From: Cyanophora paradoxa CCMP329
Taxonomy: Eukaryota; Plantae; Glaucophyta
Assembly: GCA_004431415.1 (NCBI GenBank)
Contig: QPMI01000351.1
Location: 1 to 31,719 of the forward strand
Direction: 5' to 3'
Length of the DNA stretch: 31,719 bases
The position numbers and the translations under genes are program-made. Under the pieces are notes generated by a model that worked only from the letters and a program-made list of their open reading frames with translations, ran no database searches and was not told where the DNA came from. Positions 2,431 to 12,260 of this stretch are shown here, piece by piece (within the stretch, counting starts at the first letter, position 1; the number at the start of each line of letters is the position of its first letter).

Positions 2431-3469
2431 AGGCGCGGACTCGGCCTCCAGTTCTCGTCCGGCCCGCCGCCGCCCCCAGCGCCCGCCTAGGTTCCAGTAC
2501 GGAAAGCAAGCCGCTCTGACGAAAGTTCGGTTCAAGGAGCTCCTGGAGGCCAGCCTGAGCCGGACCAGCCCCGGCGCCGAATGCGTGGCAGCAATCCTCG
2601 ACGAAATCGAGCGGGACGCCGCCGCGCCGCCGCAGCAGCGCCTGACCCGCCTCAGCGCCGCGCTCGACGGGGCGCTCGATCGAGTCAAGGAGATCGGCCA
2701 GTCCGCGGACTTCGGCATGTACACGCCCGCACGCAAGACCCAAAAGTTCTCTCGCAGGGGCCGGCCAGAGTCGGCGCTGCTCACGCGCGCGCAGGAACTC
2801 CGGCGCACCTGGGCGGCGGCGCGACACGGACCCGACTCCACGCCTCGCCGAGTGAGACACGCGCTATCGGACCTCCGCCTCGCCATCTCAAACCATAACC
2901 GTCGCATCTCGCAGCTCCCCGTGGAGAAACGGTCCGGCTATAGTCTCCTCCCGGCTCCACCCCCCTCTCCTCCTTTCTCAGCGCCGCAGCCCCGCTGGCT
3001 CGAGCACTACGATGTGTTCCTGGCATGGGTCTCGGCGCTCGACAAGAAGGTCGACCTGCACATCCGCGGCTTCGAGACCAAGCGCATCCTGGCGAGCCGC
3101 GAACGCACGCGCCGCATGTTCAAAGTTGACCTCGCGCAGCACCTCCGACTGGTCCTGGAGGCGCCGGCTCGCCGAGGTATCACATCTTTCTCGTTCTTCG
3201 ATGGGCTCGAATACAAAGTGTATGACTCCGAAGAGCAAGTCTGTCCCTTTGCCCGCCAGCACATGCACGCCTGGACCAAGCGCAGAGCACCCCTAACGGC
3301 CTGCCTCGACCCGCTAGGTCTCCCGCTAAGCGAATGCGCCCGGGACCCCCGCCTCTGGCAGCGACTGCACGCGCCGCGGGACGACATAGATGCAGCCCTA
3401 TTCGATAGCCTACTGAATCGCACGGAGGACACGGAGCTGGCAGAATCATTGGCTCGCTGAGAAACGGGG

Positions 3470-4700
3470 CGGCAGGGCCCTCGGGCCTCTCGAATGAAAT
3501 GATTAAGATGCTGTGGAGTGACCCTGTCCTCCCCAGGAAAACGCTCGAAGAGCTGAAGAAAGCGGGCCTGGACACCTCGGCCCTCCAGTCCGAAAACAGA
3601 ACGCCAACCTGCAGGCGGCTTCTACTGGTGACGGTCAACCTGATTCTAGAGCTCGGAGCTGTTCCTGAACCTCTGCTCTACGGAAATATCTGCCTGATCC
3701 CGAAGAGCGGAGAATGGGACGGGCACCCTGACAACGTCAGACCGATAACACTGCAAGAATGCGCCCTGAAACTGGTCACAGCTCTTCTCACGGATAGACT
3801 CTCCAGGATCATCCGAAAGAACGAACTACTGAAGGGCGCAAACTACGCCTTTACACGTGGTAAATCGACGGACGAGCCGCTCTACATGATGCGCGCATTA
3901 CTTGAAGATGCGAAACAGTTCTCTAAACCGATCTACCTGCTCCTCCTTGACATCCGTCGAGCCTACGACAGCGTGAGCTGGCCCAGCATGGCGATGGCCC
4001 TCCGCCGCCTCCGCATCCCTGAGAAGTACATTCAGCTGTACGAACAGCTCACGACGCGGCGCAAGGCATCGGTCCTCACGGGTACGGCCCCACCGAACCG
4101 TTCGATGTCGAGTGCGGGCTTCCCCAGGGGGTACGGAATCGCCTATCCACTGGCTCATCTTTTACGATGTCTTCCTTACGGCCCTGCGCGAAGTCAGCGC
4201 GGCGGAGGGTACAACATACCGCATGGGGCCCGGGATCGCACCTCGCCCGGCCCCCCCGCCAGCTCACCGCCTCCGGGCTCACCTCCCCGACGTTGACTCG
4301 CCAGGGCAGGCCTACGCGGACGACACCGTGCTCATCAGCTCGTCCGCGCGGGGGGTACAACTGCATGCGGACCTGGTATCGGAATTCTTCTGGATCCACG
4401 ATATCGCCCTGAACGCGAAGAAGACTGAGTTCACTTATAACAACGTATCTCCCGAGCCCAAACCGCCCCTCCTTGGCCCGCCCGGGGCCAAGGAGCGTGC
4501 GCACCACGTCCTGCCCCCGACGAAGCCCTTCAAGTTCCTGGGGGTCTGGTTTACCGCGGACCTAAATTGGAGGCATCAGTTCGAAGCGGTCTACACGATG
4601 GCGCAGACCGCCTGCGCGATCCTAAAGAAAAAGAAGCTCACCGCAAAGGAAGCAGTGTACATCGTGAACAGCGTACTCATCCCGCGCATCACGTACGCCT
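3470..4700 (+). other. Non-LTR reverse transcriptase domain of ORF2
   Basis: LIPK..NVRPITLQE, LLLLDIRRAYDSV, frameshifted GFPQG(G)TESP, QAYADDTVL (~4307-4335), LNAKKT, FKFLGVW. Confidence 0.97.
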
Positions 4701-6117
4701 GCAAGGTTGTCGCGTACACCGAGCGCCAGTGCGCCCAGATAGATACCCTGTGGATGACGCTAGTCAAGCATCAGGCGCGCCTCCGCCGCTCGGCGCCCAA
4801 CGCCCTAATATGGAGCCGCGGATTCTATGGGCTGAAGCGCCTGGCAGACGAGCAGCTCGCCATACACGTCCTAGACGAAACAATCCGCGCGAACCACCCG
4901 ACGCTTCGCCCGTATCTCCTCCACCGCGTGTTCGCGGCGCAGGAAAAGCTATGCCTTCCTCTCCCCCGTACTGCTATCCGAACCTAGATCCAGGCCCGAC
5001 CCTCCGGCGCGATCATCTAGCCCTCGCTATAGCCCGAAATATGAATGCGGAGGGCTACATCCTCGACTCGGGAAGGTCGCACCTGACTCCGGCCCTCCCG
5101 CATCCTCGACTCGAACGAAGATTCGTCCTCACTACGCTTCTACCGCCAGCCCTCCTCCGCAGCGCCGCGCCGTTCCTGTGGGAACACGATCTGCTGACGG
5201 CGGCGGACATCACGGGCCCGGACGGGCGCACCGTTCTGGACTGGGCGAGCCTCTGGGGCAGCGGCCGCGTCCGCCAGCGTCTCGGCCGGGCGCCGTCGTG
5301 GTTCCCAGACTTCCTCCGCGCAATCTGCGAGCCCGTCCCGCCGAGGAAGCTCCCACGCTCCCTGCGCTTCCCCATGCACGTGCTCAAGCAGGGGGCGCGG
5401 CGCCAGCAGACGCTTTTCGAAGCGAACCTGATGAGCCCGCCGTACGTGGAGGGACAGTTCGCCTGGCACCCGCAGGGCTACCTGACGCGCATCGTTAGCA
5501 AATGGGAGGAGCGCGATGAAGACGATGGGCGCCTCCGCGTGTACGTCCGCCTGGAACATTGGATCTGGCGCGACCGCACGATCCGCGACGGCGACGGGGA
5601 GGGCGCCGCCCGATTCTACAAGTGCACGATGCTCAAAGATGAGTGCGATGCGCGGTACACGACGGACGATGCGACAGCCAAGGCGGCGCGCCAGCGCTGC
5701 GACCACTCTGAGCCGGAGTCAGGCGCCTGCCAGTGGACCGAGGACTCTATCCACATTCACCCGGCCGCCTCCTCGAGCTAATCACCCCGGCGACCCGCAC
5801 GCGGAAGCACGAACCGTACGCGGTTGTGAAGCTAGAGAGTCAGGAGTGGTGGACCGAGTTCCGCACGACGCTCTTCCTTCCTCCGTGGGAACGCGATTGG
5901 GATTACGAAGCGGATCCCTCCGCGCAGCCCCAGCCGCCGTCGGGCTACAAGCAACGCCGCCCGGGTACAGTGCCACCGCGCACCGCACCGCCTGTATACC
6001 CGGATCGCCAGCCTCTCGAGCACTTTCTCATCGACCCGGAGCCCCTAGCCGACCCGTTCTGGAACCTCGTAGCCCAGGAGCTTCGCCGCGAGGAGCTCCC
6101 CGCTGCCCGGCCCCCGA

Positions 6118-7135
6118 GAGTGGCGGCGACCGATGCCAGCACAACGGGGTTCGGATCCGAGGCGGCGCTAACGGCTTACGCGGGTGTCTGGACCCGGACC
6201 ACGAGCAGAACGCGGCGCACTCCCCAGCGGATCGGCAGCGGGAAGCCCAGCGCCGCAGCGAAGGTATACAGCTGAAAAACCAGCTGCTGCGTGAAGCCGA
6301 TGCATGCGCAGAAGATGACGCCCCACAGGCGGCGGCCCTGCGGAGCTCGCCGAAGCCATCCCCACGGACGGCAGCGACTTCTTTGTCGCCCCGTGCCCGG
6401 GCACTGTCAACAACAACAAAGGCGAGCTCCTCGCCGTCCTCACGGCCTTCTTAAAGTCGCCCGAGGGCTGCACAGTTAAGACAGACAGCTCGACGGCGAT
6501 GTCACTCATCCGCCGCTCTGTCCTGCACCGCGCTGACTCGACGGTCCGCAGCGGCCTTCGCACCAACTTCTCGCACCATCTGCGAGCGGCTGCAGAAGTC
6601 CATCAGCACCGCAGAGCCCTCGCCGCCGCCGCCGGAAGGCCACCCGCCGAGGTCCGCGTACAGAAGGTGAAGGCGCATCAGAAAGAGTACACTGACCGGC
6701 CTGCGCCTGTCGCCCCGGCAGAGCCCGAGACGGACAGCGATGCGGACGACTCCGGATCGTACGTGTCCTACCTCTCCGCCCCGGACGACCTCCCCCCCGA
6801 GCCCTCTGACGCCGAGCTGTACACAAGGGACAAGGGGTGTACGCCGGGCGCCCGAACCCGCTTTCGGGCGCTTATAACTACCTGTCCGAGCACATCCGTG
6901 CGCGCACTGCTCACCTCCGCCGCCGCGAGACTCGACGCATTCTCCACCAGATCGAACGTCAGACCCGCAAGGCGCGCCGGGAGGAACGCCAGCGCCGTCG
7001 AGACGCGCTCGCGGCTCTCGGGCCCCACGTTCCCGCCCTCGCCGGCCTCCCGATCGCCCAACGCATGGAGAGGGTACTGAATGATGCGTACGACCGGGAT
7101 AACCACCGAGCCGACCGCCTCGCCGCAGCGGCGCT
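6118..7135 (+). other. RNase H domain of ORF2, with a large insertion
   Basis: VAATDAS (D1, ~6131), NNKGELLAVL (E, 6424), VKTDSSTA (D2, ~6484), VQKVKAH (~6658-6678), NHRADRLA (D3, ~7101-7124). Confidence 0.85.
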
Positions 7136-7664
7136 CGCCCTGCACCCCTGCGCCCCGTTCTCCAAGGTCTGCAGCGATGGCCACGGCCTCAATGCCTGGG
7201 CTGACGTCGAGAGCGCCACCTGGCAGGCAGATCCCGCAGTCGCATCCGACCCCGCCGTCTCGGCTGCCGCAAAACGTGCATGGCTAGCACGGCGTGAGCC
7301 CCTCTTTCCCCCCGGCGGGTTCGAGTTCGTCCTCCTCTTCTCACCCCCCCGCAGGAGCCTGGAGGGGTACGACTCCAGCAGAGCGTACCGCGTCGAGTCC
7401 GACCCCCGGGCCCACGTCCGCGCCGTCTGCGAAATGCGTAACTTCGTGCGGCTGACGTCGCTTGAATCCTCGTGGCTCGGCGCCCCGGCCGACCGGGCAC
7501 GGCTCGCGCGCGAATTCCGTAAGCAAGGCGCCTCCCGCGACGCGTCAGCCCCGTTCAATGCCCGCCTTGCGCAGCTCACCAAATTCAGCATGGAACTCGC
7601 GCCCCTCCTACCTGTCCGTGCCCGCGATGCCCCACACCTCTACGGCAACATCAACCCGCAAGGC

Positions 7665-7845
7665 CTGTGCGTACGCCCTGGGTGCGCTCGCGTCGCCGAC
7701 GCCTCCGGCGGCCCCATCCCGGCACCCCCCTGGGCACCGAGGCGCGACCCAGGAGCCGCCGCAACCGCAGACCGCGACCCCCCGCCGGCGCTCCACAGCG
7801 CGAGTCAACCCGAGACCCACGACCACGCCTTCGGCCTTTGTTCGG
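7665..7845 (+). other. CCHC-type Cys/His finger of LINE ORF2, with a long spacer
   Basis: LCVRPGC ... ETHDHAFGLC. Followed downstream by IWQARN (~8285), resembling the IWxxRN motif of L1-group ORF2 C-termini. Confidence 0.65.
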
Positions 7846-8929
7846 CATCGCAAGCGCCCGGCTCGCTATGCAATCCAAGATTTACAACCTCCTCCACACA
7901 ACGATCACCACGCAGAGACTAAAGTCGGCCGCAACGAGGTACGAGCTCCGGACGGCCTGAAGTCGGACGGCCTGTTCCTCCGCGACCTATTTCCCGCCTT
8001 CGCCCTCGCTGACGAACGCCGCTGGCGTCAGACCGTGCACGAACGCTCGCGACCCGGGCCTGTACCCCCCACCTCCGTGCCTGTCTCTACGGCTCCCCCT
8101 CCCGCTGGCTGACTCACGGACAGGCCCTTTTCACCGACCTCTCGCACGACTCGCCCCGCCTGTCCGTCCGGCTGCTCCTCCCCGCAGTCTGGTCCCGGCC
8201 CTCGAGTACCTTCATGTCCGCGCCCCCGCTGCTCGTAAATGCGCGAACGGGATCTTTGATGTACTTGTGACTGGGCTCCAGGAGATTTGGCAGGCGCGAA
8301 ACTCGGACGTCCAAGCCTGGCAGCGCCGCTGTGGCCTCAAGCGTCGGACTCTGACGGCGCCCCGACCCCCGCCAGCAACAGACCCCGCGGCCCGCCGAAG
8401 AAGCCGCCGCGCCCGGGAGACACGCCCCCAGCCGGACCCGAACCCGCAGCCCGCACCCGTAGTGCCGGTCAGTAGTATTCCGGTACCCCCAAGCGTACCG
8501 GAACGCGCCCGTCTCCAGCCGACGGCAGCGCCAGCGCGCGATGCGCACTCAGCAGTAGGCCGGTCGAGCACAGACCGTCCAGCTTGCCCGCCCTCCCCGC
8601 CCGACGCCCATGACCTGATGAATGTCGCCGCAGACAGCCCGCACAGCCCGCCCACGAACCCCAAAGCAACCTCGCGATCGGACGCCCCTCCCGTGAGCTC
8701 AGCCCCCAGCTTAACCCTCCACCCCCCTGAGCCCCCAGCGCCTCACCCGCCGGAGCCCCGGCACTCACCCTTGCCCGCGGCCCCGACCCGCCCGCAGCCC
8801 AGCCCGTGGCCCCCCCTGCCGCCGTCCGAAGAGGTCCGCCTAGCGTGGGCACAGACCCGACCCGGCCCGCTAAAGCCTGCGCAGGAAGTACTCCGACAGA
8901 TCTCCTCGCCGCTGCTCGGTACCTCGGGC

Positions 8930-9550
8930 AGCATCAACGTCACGAGGAGATCTCTCAGTCGGCTCAATGGTGAGACCTGGTTAGACGACGAGACCGTTGT
9001 CTTCTACCTCGCCCTCCTCGCCCAACTCCCTGCCCTGGCCCGCCGTCCACTAATCTTTGACTCGCTTGAGTACCCTAACCTCTCCGCGCCAGGCCGAGGC
9101 CCCCAGCGCCTTCACAACAAGCTGGTAGCCCGCGGGGTCAGCCCGTTCGACTTCGATGTTCTGCTCTTCCCGATCCACTCACCGGGCCACTGGACCTTCG
9201 CTGCGATCCACGTACGTGACCGTCGAGCCGAACTCTATGATGCCTACAACCTGCCAAACGCAGAGTCGGCTCGAGAGAAGCTGGCCCCGATTCTCCGCTG
9301 GCTCCAGCTCGAGCGCCGGGAACGCAACCTTCCCTCAGACGACCCCACCGCCTGGCCGCTTGCATCGGCCACCAGGTACCCCATCCCCGAACAACGGGAC
9401 CGCTTCAGCTGCGGTGTAATTGTCTGTGCCCTGGCAGACGCCCTGGTCCGGGGCCAAGAAGACGCGCTCACGGACCCCAACTCGCCCTTCGATGGCAGCA
9501 GTCGGTGCTGCGCCCACTGGCGCAGCCTCATCCTCACCCGAATCCTAGCC
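8930..9550 (+). other. Ulp1/SENP-like cysteine protease (peptidase C48, clan CE) domain
   Basis: LSRLNGETWLDDETV (W 8978), LLFPIHSPGHW (His 9188), LYDAY (Asp 9239), PEQRDRFSCGVIVC (Gln 9392, Cys 9410). All lie in the uninterrupted ORF 8267-10087, in frame with the IWQARN motif. Confidence 0.92.
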
Positions 9551-11105
9551 ACAAGCCAACGGCCCCCAGCACCCGGACCCGGCCCCAGAGGTCCGCCCCA
9601 GCCCCCTCCGGCTCCGGCTCCACCCCCGCCGCCGCGAGCCCGGACCCCCCGCCCCCCCACGCCCCGCCCCGCCCCCGCCTCGCCTCGCCCACCTCCGACA
9701 GGCCGACCGGAGGCGACAGGCCCTTCCTCCCGACTAGGTGCCGGCACAGCTCGACCCGGCAAGGGCCGTGGCAAAGGTCGCGGCAGAGGACGACCGTGGC
9801 GATGCGCCCCCTCCAATCCTACTTCCGGTCCGCGGTCGGTCTCTCCCCCGTTCCCCCGGCCCCGACTCGCAACTGCCCCTCCCCCTCCGGACTCCCCGCC
9901 GCCCCCGCCCCAGCGGACCCTCCGCCACCCCCGGCCCCCTCCCCTCGCCCGCCCGACCGGCCCTCCACCGTCCCCCGGCCCCGTCTCCCCCCCCTTCCCC
10001 CCAGCCCCCTCCCCCCACACCCCCAGCCTCCTCCCCTCCCCGCAGCCCAGCCCCGCTACCCCGCCGCCTCACGCGCCGCGAGCGTGAGCTGGCCGCCCTC
10101 CGTGACTCGGCCGGCTTCACCTCCGCCCGCAACAATCTTCTTGCACGTGGAGACCGCGGAGCCCGACGTGCAGGTCCGGCTGTCCCAGCCCCTGATCCAC
10201 AGGACCGCCCCCCCCGGACTCCCCCGCCTCGGCGAGCCTCTCTGACCCCCCACACCGCCGTCACCCGTCGAACCGCAAGACCGGCCCCGCCCCGCCAGCC
10301 CCGCGCCCCCGCCGCCGGCCCCCCACCACCGCCGGCACCGCCCTCGGTCCCCGCACCACCGCCCCCATTCGAGTTTTCCGCCCGCGCGCGCCAGCTCCAC
10401 CCCGAGGCACTCCCGCCCCCAGACCGATGTCCCCTCTGCCTACACCCCTGGGCCGTCACCGCCGCCTCCACCGAGCCCCGTACCCCTTCTCTGCCCCCAA
10501 GGTACCACCCCTGCTCCACCGCGGCGACCTCATCCAGTCCCTCCTCATCTTCGGCCTCTCCCCGCTGGGCTACAGACCCTGAGCCCAAAGTGTGCACTCC
10601 CTGCCCGCGCGCGCCGGGCTGACGCCACGCTCGCGCTTGAGAGGCCCACTCCTGGAGGAGAGCAGGCCCCTCGGGCGTGGCCTGCCTGCCCGCGCCAGGT
10701 CCGGTCCCGCCGCGCAGGTGCAGGCTGCCACGCCGCTGGCAGCCTGCAGGGCGGGACCCGCCGCCGGATGGGGGCCCCAACCCTCCCCCGGGGCCCCGCG
10801 CCCGGCGGCGCTCGCACCGCAGAGGCGGTGCGCAATAAATCCTCCGGGGCCCTGCCCCAATAAACTCTCCGGCCCCAGCTCCCCACCCCAACCCCACCCC
10901 CCAATGGCCGCGCTCGCGCGGCCGCTGGGGAGGCCCCACCGAGGGCCGCAAGAGTGGCCTTAGGGGTAGGGCTCGCAGTAGGGAGATTCCCTCGGGTTAG
11001 TCTAGCTGGAGACCCAATAGGGGGAGTAAGCTAGACTTGTCGTGTGTTTGTAGGCTTAGGCCTAGGGTAGGCAGATAGCATTAGCTGTTTGTCAACTTGG
11101 GGCAC

Positions 11106-11144
11106 CAGTCCCTAATACACTAGGGATTACTGAAAAAAAAAAAA
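11106..11144 (+). other. LINE 3' terminal stem-loop and poly(A) tail
   Basis: TCCCTA (11109-11114) pairs with TAGGGA (11121-11126), flanked by CAG/CTG, and is immediately followed by 12 A (11133-11144). Confidence 0.8.
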
Positions 11145-11312
11145 GGCGCGGGGCCCGTCCTGGGAGAACGGGCGCAGTTCCGCGGGCCCATCCCCTCATG
11201 TGCCCCCTCACTCCCTCGAGGCGAGCCTTTTGTCTCGCGCCCGGCGGCCCCGGCTCATCTTATAGATTCTGAATTTGAGTTTAATACACGTCGTTCCTGT
11301 GTGCTCTCACGC

Positions 11313-12260
11313 TCGCCGCCCCGCCCGTCGAGCCGCGCCGCCGCCGGCCGCTCCGATCCTCCGCCCCGCCCAGAGCCGAGCCGCGCCGCCGCCCGCCGCG
11401 GCGCCGCCCCACCCGTCGAGCCGCGCCGCCGCCGGCCGCTCCGATCCTCCGCCCCGCCCAGAGCCGAGCCGCGCCGCCGCCCGCCGCGGCGCCGCCCCAC
11501 CCGTCGAGCCGCGCCGCCGCCGGCCGCTCCGATCCTCCGCCCCGCCCAGAGCCGAGCCGCGCCGCCGCCCGCCGCGGCGCCGCCCCGCCCGTCGAGCCGC
11601 GCCGCCGCCGGCCGCTCCGATCCTCCGCCCCGCCCAGAGCCGAGCCGCGCCGCCGCCCGCCGCGGCGCCGCCCCACCCGTCGAGCCGCGCCGCCGCCGGC
11701 CGCTTCGATCCTCCGCCCCGCCCAGAGCCGAGCCGCGCCGCCGCCCGCCGCGGCGCCGCCCCACCCGTCGAGCCGCGCCGCCGCCGGCCGCTCCGATCCT
11801 CCGCCCCGCCCAGAGCCGAGCCGCGCCGCCGCCCGCCGCGGCGCCGCCCCACCGTCGAGCCGCGCCGCCGCCGGCCGCTCCGATCCTCCGCCCCGCCCAG
11901 AGCCGAGCCGCGCCGCCGCCCGCCGCGGCGCCGCCCCGCCCGTCGAGCCGCGCCGCCGCCGGCCGCTCCGATCCTCCGCCCCGCCCAGAGCCGAGCCGCG
12001 GCGCCGCCCGCCGCGGCGCCGCCCACCCGTCGAGCCGCGCCGCCGCCGGCCGCTTCGATCCTCCGCCCCGCCCAGAGCCGAGCCGCGCCGCCGCCCGCCG
12101 GGCACCGCCCCGCCCGTTGAGCCGCGCCGCCGCCGGCCACACCTCCGCCCGCCGCGGCGCCGCCCTGCCCGTCGAGCCGCACCGCCGCCGGCCGCCCGTC
12201 GAGCCGCGGCCCGCCCGCTGCTCCTCCGCCGCGCTCGTCGAGCCGCGCCGCCCGCCCGGC
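11313..12260. repeat. GC-rich tandem satellite, 88-bp unit, ~9 full copies plus a degenerate tail
   Basis: The GTCGAG anchor recurs at 11327, 11415, 11503, 11591, 11679, 11767, 11854, 11942, 12029 and 12116 (GTTGAG variant), spaced 87-88 bp. Confidence 0.97.

Follow-up and report, generated by a model that had tools for sequence, protein, structure and literature searches.

Ulp1 domains are recurrent in mobile elements (PMC2836005, PMC4640811). Among non-LTR retrotransposons, NeSL and Utopia-1_TSP of nematodes possess an Ulp1-like cysteine protease at the N-terminus of the RT polyprotein, together with a C-terminal RLE (PMC4640811). Further, the passages of PMC9977147 on Dualen/RandI of Chlamydomonas describe a long algal LINE with APE, RT, RNase H and a cysteine protease, in which target duplications are long (median 900 bp), the protease is related to Josephin and a second (RLE) endonuclease is present. 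The transposon proteins of Ginger1 and Mutator also contain Ulp1, which is C-terminal in Ginger1. In contrast to LINEs, these are DNA transposons with DDE transposases, and a role of Ulp1 in transposition or repair has been proposed for them, not shown (PMC2836005). Finally, the 5' end of the telomeric element TART directly repeats a subterminal stretch, the second copy of which lies in the 3' UTR; transcripts start in both copies (PMC1636488), a template jump has been proposed and spliced antisense RNAs are produced (PMC1636488, PMC5537684).

We analyzed a stretch of 31,719 nt of Cyanophora paradoxa CCMP329 (contig QPMI01000351.1), hereafter the window, in which a frame without stops (7961-10084, plus strand) links the IWQARN motif of a LINE to an Ulp1/SENP-type (C48) domain. 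The sequence-only reading had reported that this motif, a Pro-rich linker and C48 lie in a single open frame, and this was borne out. The features of the element, all on the plus strand, are as follows.

1-182, +, 5' copy of a direct repeat, the other copy of which (8491-8674) lies in the linker (sequence comparison)
586-1395, +, putative ORF1 or N-terminal leader, the TGA of which overlaps the ORF2 ATG (ATGA)
1392-2484, +, start of ORF2 and APE endonuclease (Exo_endo_phos, E 6.5e-5)
3448-4960, +, non-LTR RT with YADD, and thumb; spread over three frames in the assembly
5400-5760, +, region with Cys and His residues that separates RT from RNase H
6120-7140, +, RNase H, split by two inserts (Pfam/alignment)
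7668-7841, +, CCHC zinc finger (C-x4-C, Pro/Ala insert, H-x4-C; by eye)
8285-8302, +, IWQARN motif, equal to IWxPR near the ORF2 end of the relatives L001 and L008
8303-8890, +, Pro-rich linker (231 codons, 23% Pro)
8491-8674, +, internal copy of the direct repeat, with an in-frame ATG at 8618
8891-9556, +, Ulp1/SENP-type C48 protease domain (Pfam, PDB sequence match, fold model)
9212-9263, +, 52-nt GT-AG intron (probable RNA contigs, joint 9211/9264)
9373-9437, +, 62-nt GT-AG intron, cut ambiguous by 3 (probable RNA contigs, joint 9372/9435)
9557-10620, +, Pro-rich C-terminal tail, interrupted by assembly indels
11133-11144, +, poly(A) tail (sequence)

Unlike NeSL and Utopia, the element has APE, RNase H after RT and a C-terminal protease; the combination of C-terminal RLE, N-terminal protease and missing APE was not found in it. 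The place after the zinc finger is occupied by the C48 domain, which was the only Pfam match there in a search that a very divergent RLE could escape, and no Josephin match was found by Pfam in the element, including upstream of APE. In contrast to TART, the 182-bp copy of the repeat is located inside ORF2, and no link to telomeres was seen. A literature search confined to sources other than Repbase/Dfam and most subscription papers returned no APE-type LINE with a C-terminal Ulp1, in agreement with the earlier impression that the order APE-RT-RNase H-Zn finger-Ulp1 is unfamiliar; the passages of PMC6704402 on the C. paradoxa genome describe no such LINE family. The domain order appears to be new for APE-type LINEs, Ulp1 itself being already known in NeSL/Utopia and in DNA transposons.

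Architecture, reading frame and copies of the element

The element is an APE-type non-LTR retrotransposon: APE precedes a non-LTR RT, the 3' end carries poly(A), copies are dispersed and no LTR-type terminal repeat pair was found in the window. Its apparent 5' end coincides with the start of the window (position 1). The order APE-RT-RNase H-CCHC-IWxxR-Ulp1 was upheld by Pfam, Illumina contigs and alignment to relatives, and the protease does lie upstream of the element's poly(A). The APE motifs GDFN and SDH align with those of the relatives. No Pfam match was obtained for 586-1395, the frame of which is uncertain through assembly indels, or for the Cys/His region, where an Atlas search gave only ankyrin matches under 0.9 that were not credible. 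Candidates for the D-E-D-H-D residues of RNase H are located at ~6132, 6424, 6484, 6676 and 7113; one insert follows the first strands and another (~130-150 aa) lies in the His loop. The latter (6680-7100), which is acidic and then basic, is absent from L001 and L008. By eye, the CCHC finger matches the C-x2-C...H-x-W-x-C finger of these two relatives. The RNase H stretch 6355-6440 is common to a second family of similar depth, and the listed differences between them are all synonymous (5/5), a sign of purifying selection.

When Illumina contigs were compared with the window, an 8.4-kb contig, one in each of two DNA runs, spanned 5300 to ~8550; over these 3.3 kb, it had 17 added letters but only 4 substitutions. 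Of 15 frame steps, 14 go in one direction. A single ORF would have to pass from frame 0 (at 5300) into frame 1 (at 8586), and the 17 added letters bring about exactly this change; 3 further letters between 8596 and 9157 leave frame 1 unchanged; by the count of dropped bases, a single frame is held from 5300 to 9157. The frameshifts of the window are mostly bases lost in assembly. A decayed pseudogene is ruled out by the preponderance of added letters over substitutions and by the uniform direction of the frame steps. The frameshifted pieces were searched separately and joined locally with X at the breaks. The C. paradoxa assembly is PacBio-based and GC-rich, with abundant short introns, and its paper puts LINEs at 2.47% of the genome (PMC6704402).

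The other two frames of the linker contain 9 and 4 stops, and in Markov simulations any given frame was open by chance in 2.4% of cases. Illumina contigs contain three extra letters inside the linker (8692-8914), the net frame effect of which is zero; when they were placed by run extension, the frame stayed open in only 37-55% of placements. Because these letters are unplaced, we regard the fusion of LINE ORF2 with the protease as likely, not more. The proposal that LINE ORF2 is joined to the protease rests on the Illumina indel counts and not on the letters of the window, in which RNase H and the zinc finger sit in other frames. The proposed ORF end at 10087 had to be abandoned: Illumina contigs add 14 letters over 9503-10215, which carries the frame past this stop. 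It is almost certainly an assembly artefact; the true stop of ORF2 would fall somewhere between ~10580 and ~10860, and ORF2 probably comprises ~3,100 aa in one frame. The C-terminal tail contains an RG-rich patch, a PIP-box-like MRPLQSYF and a CxxC...HxC pattern. The PIP-box-like sequence (9802-9825, pattern match only) directly follows the RG-rich patch.

Near-identical proteins in EukProt proved to be C. paradoxa gene models, of which those of tig00001472_g8882 represent this locus and match the window without substitution. Pieces of the element are present on 8 other contigs; on six other contigs, gene models unite a near-identical LINE core and C48 with few substitutions, and on two further contigs the models comprise linker, protease and tail only (P0001, P0005). 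The six contigs establish the protease as common to copies and rule out a one-off transduction or a chimeric assembly. Nested insertion of a separate protease element is disfavoured, as depth does not differ between the two sides and 8491 is not preceded by a poly(A). Illumina depth was 589.5 in the body of the element and 617.7 at the start of its protease, compared with ~41-66 in side contigs, which suggests roughly ten near-identical long copies, depth not being a strict copy number. Depth climbs further 3', where a second, minor variant class appears with Gly-to-Ser beside the catalytic Cys and a 6-letter insertion. Synonymous variants accounted for 3/5 in the protease and 3/3 in the RG patch (small numbers). 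The best explanation is a young, recently mobile family of APE-type LINEs of C. paradoxa. Such elements are concealed in the present annotation as spurious multi-exon genes.

The protease domain and its relatives

The domain matched Pfam Peptidase_C48 (PF02902) with E 1.4e-10 and 41.8 bits, above the curated cut-off of 20.7, and the best PDB sequence match was SENP1 (E 6.8e-18). The His-Asp-Gln-Cys set described as intact is so: H (9188), D (9239), Q (9392) and C (9410) align with SENP1 H533, D550, Q597 and C603, and the tunnel tryptophans W465 and W534 (W 8978 and its partner) and the WLxDE motif are retained. In a fold model (pLDDT 87), the best Foldseek matches were SENP1, SENP2 and Ulp1 (SENP1 E 6.8e-12, TM 0.74), and a NEDD8 protease (E 1e-6) and XopD ranked lower; the model was built on a SENP-rich alignment and hence is not fully independent of the sequence. 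All of the best protein-library matches checked (150/150) were Ulp1/SENP-like. The domain thus resembles cellular SENP1, SENP2 and Ulp1 (MEROPS C48) in fold, catalytic residues and tunnel tryptophans but differs from them in its ~30% identity, its altered exosite positions and its fusion to a LINE protein.

The protease lies on a long branch, with ~30% identity to anything else. The retention of the active site despite this branch suggests long selection on the active site. The GC content at its codon positions resembles that of RT. The equivalents of SENP1 D468/E469 are retained, and those of F496/F497, R511/W512 and G600, which in SENP1 belong to the SUMO-body contact and the oxyanion loop or lie close to them, are changed (L/E, L/V and R). 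Specificity may therefore have shifted. From the kept tunnel and the SENP-like fold, the domain is predicted to cut behind the Gly-Gly of some ubiquitin-like modifier, with SUMO as the most likely one.

The nearest outside relatives found were the soil-metagenome LINEs L001 and L008, which are collinear with the element in APE, RT, thumb, RNase H and IWxxR. Their RTs are 33-39% identical to that of the element, with which they share a KVKAH-type RNase H. In contrast to the element, they are AT-rich, their ORF2 (~2,000 aa) ends 90-145 aa past the IW motif, and neither C48 nor the 5'/internal repeat is present. A C48 match was absent in 17/17 related loci; the protein searches were length-limited, and full-length relatives with RT and C48 could escape them. 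In an RT tree with rows from Cyanophora and metagenomes only, the element grouped with other Cyanophora RT families (~50% identity) and then with the soil elements. As the protease is missing from the closest outside relatives, it appears to have been gained in a Cyanophora lineage. Rfam, viral contig and RT C-half homolog searches gave no result.

The best protease matches outside the family were the Cyanophora ULP1-like gene P0004 (32-34% identity) and g657 (P0015, 29%), the latter sharing with the element the segment IPEQ-x-D-x-FSCGV...P-x-x-PF-x-G-x4-C. P0015 (tig00000430_g657) is a divergent Cyanophora C48 protein with an N-terminal domain and a 430-aa tail. A 38-row tree placed the element protease, P0004 and P0015 together with Chara and pedinophyte proteins (98/88); a 149-row quick tree was without that grouping, and AU tests rejected no grouping. 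These trees single out no donor of the protease. Recent capture of the host ULP1 (P0004) is unsupported, given the low identity, the disagreement between the trees and the AU tests.

The 5'/internal repeat and RNA contigs

When 1-182 was compared with 8491-8674, the first 134 nt were identical save for one dropped C; beyond them, identity was ~80%, fading by ~210. A long contig of one run stops at 8521, one word length into the repeat, as would be expected of a junction near 8491. The repeat was found in this copy; its depth (1.5-1.8x, inflated by overlaps) and the breaks of contigs are compatible with its presence in several copies. The identity gradient conflicts with an origin of the 5' repeat from a fresh target duplication. 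A fossil target duplication refreshed by template jumping would account for this gradient as well as for the repeat itself and the in-frame fusion. At the other end of the element, the flank behind the poly(A) (11145-11250) is a high-copy repeat with a depth of 2,500-4,500, which other contigs enter at 11144 from different upstream sequence. Close 3' of the element, a GC-rich 88-bp tandem array occupies 11314-12138 (9.4 copies, 97% matches).

Two probable RNA runs contained many GT-AG joints of 48-93 nt from 6261 to 9435, and the DNA runs were without them. Removal of the 52-nt intron excises the catalytic Asp and shifts the frame, and removal of the 62-nt intron excises Gln and Cys. No annotated gene model of any copy retains Gln and Cys. 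An RNA contig runs from upstream exons through 8282-8692. These contigs indicate presence, not expression level, and the RNA nature of the runs is a guess. Two joints at 5360-5815 are of opposite polarity (CT-AC), indicating antisense RNA. The polarity switches from CT-AC to GT-AG between 5815 and 6261, where some RNA contigs stop at 5939 and others start at 5969-5986; this switch may mark divergent internal transcription. We infer that host-type splicing disables most sense RNA and that unspliced RNA is copied.

Possible roles of the protease

The reading that we favour, with a probability of about 45%, is that the protease is a deSUMOylase tethered to LINE ORF2. Unspliced RNA alone would yield full ORF2p and would be copied back through target-primed reverse transcription. 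Held on the long, flexible Pro-rich arm, the protease would act as an isopeptidase that strips SUMO from nearby proteins at the RNP or the insertion site; ORF2p itself and chromatin-silencing or DNA-repair factors would be its targets, and removal of SUMO would favour expression or completed insertion. As to its origin, an APE-RT-RNase H LINE may have inserted near the 5' end of a divergent Ulp1-like gene, and the long target duplication made on that occasion would have become the 5'/internal repeat. Read-through from the LINE ORF would then have extended it by the protease, with the resulting polyadenylated fusion RNA as the new mobile unit.

Retroelement silencing in mouse cells needs SUMO (PMC7354471), and young TEs are methylated in C. 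paradoxa (PMC12344493). R1/R2 expression rose in Drosophila when Ulp1 itself was knocked down (PMC7676866), and deSUMOylation therefore need not benefit an element. Further arguments against a deSUMOylase are that no annotated model keeps Gln and Cys, with RNA contigs spliced through the active site, that the linker indels could make a stop, and that close relatives transpose without the protease. The more elaborate proposal of an undescribed LINE lineage, in which a captured deSUMOylase provides counter-defence, the 5' end is regenerated from an internal repeat by template jumping and host splicing that excises the catalytic residues acts as a check, appears doubtful as a whole.

Retention of the tunnel and the catalytic residues while the SUMO-contact positions changed would also be expected of an active isopeptidase for ubiquitin, NEDD8 or several modifiers that protects ORF2p or tunes repair at the insertion site. 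The fold search returned enzymes of the same clan with other or mixed specificity (NEDD8 protease, XopD and NopD), but sequence and fold are clearly closer to SENP1/2 than to the NEDD8 protease or XopD, and the library matches checked were uniformly Ulp1/SENP-like. We consider such a specificity unlikely.

Less likely still is a passenger, that is, a fragment of a captured Ulp1-like gene without a role in transposition. The near-identity of copies in a young family leaves little time for decay, relatives are without the protease, spliced RNAs destroy it and the minor variant class carries Gly-to-Ser by the catalytic Cys with the 6-letter insertion. However, the fusion is in frame along 231 codons (2.4% by chance), the best candidates for a host donor reach only 30-34% identity and yet the active site is intact, and the synonymous variants, in small numbers, point the same way.

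The protease could instead be a separate protein, translated from a short transcript with its start inside the internal repeat (ATG 8618), with the repeat as promoter and the ORF2 fusion incidental or interrupted. The repeat sits at the 5' end and directly before the protease, as would suit a promoter of the kind seen in TART, which initiates transcripts in both direct-repeat copies (PMC1636488); P0001, which starts at ATG 8618, and P0005 consist of linker, protease and tail only, and the linker indels are unplaced. Net indels nevertheless hold the frame across 8282-9157, and the RNA contig from upstream exons crosses 8282-8692, which leaves a separate protein lower again in our ranking.

Least probable is cutting of the giant ORF2 into its domains, as the sequence-only reading had offered, since despite the length of ORF2 and the cleavage after Gly-Gly by the same-clan ASFV S273R and adenovirus proteases (PMC4584293), only five Gly-Gly are present among 2,718 residues, and not one of them falls in the linker, at the protease boundary or cleanly between domains, and relatives with an ORF2 of ~2,000 aa are without a protease.

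With regard to the tethered deSUMOylase, the element offers a young, probably intact LINE with protease and RT on one chain in a culturable alga, and a single Cys-to-Ala change could tell whether a transposon turns deSUMOylation against host control or repair.

A 421-aa ORF with Peptidase_C48 was also found in the env position of another element (L018:5534-6799, also L019 and L020; SRR30758780, SRR30758800 and SRR30758801). In this element (47% GC), a 599-aa ORF in the gag position is followed by a Ty3/Gypsy-type pol (protease, RT, RNase H and integrase); judged by its sequence, it is a separate instance of Ulp1 in a retroelement.
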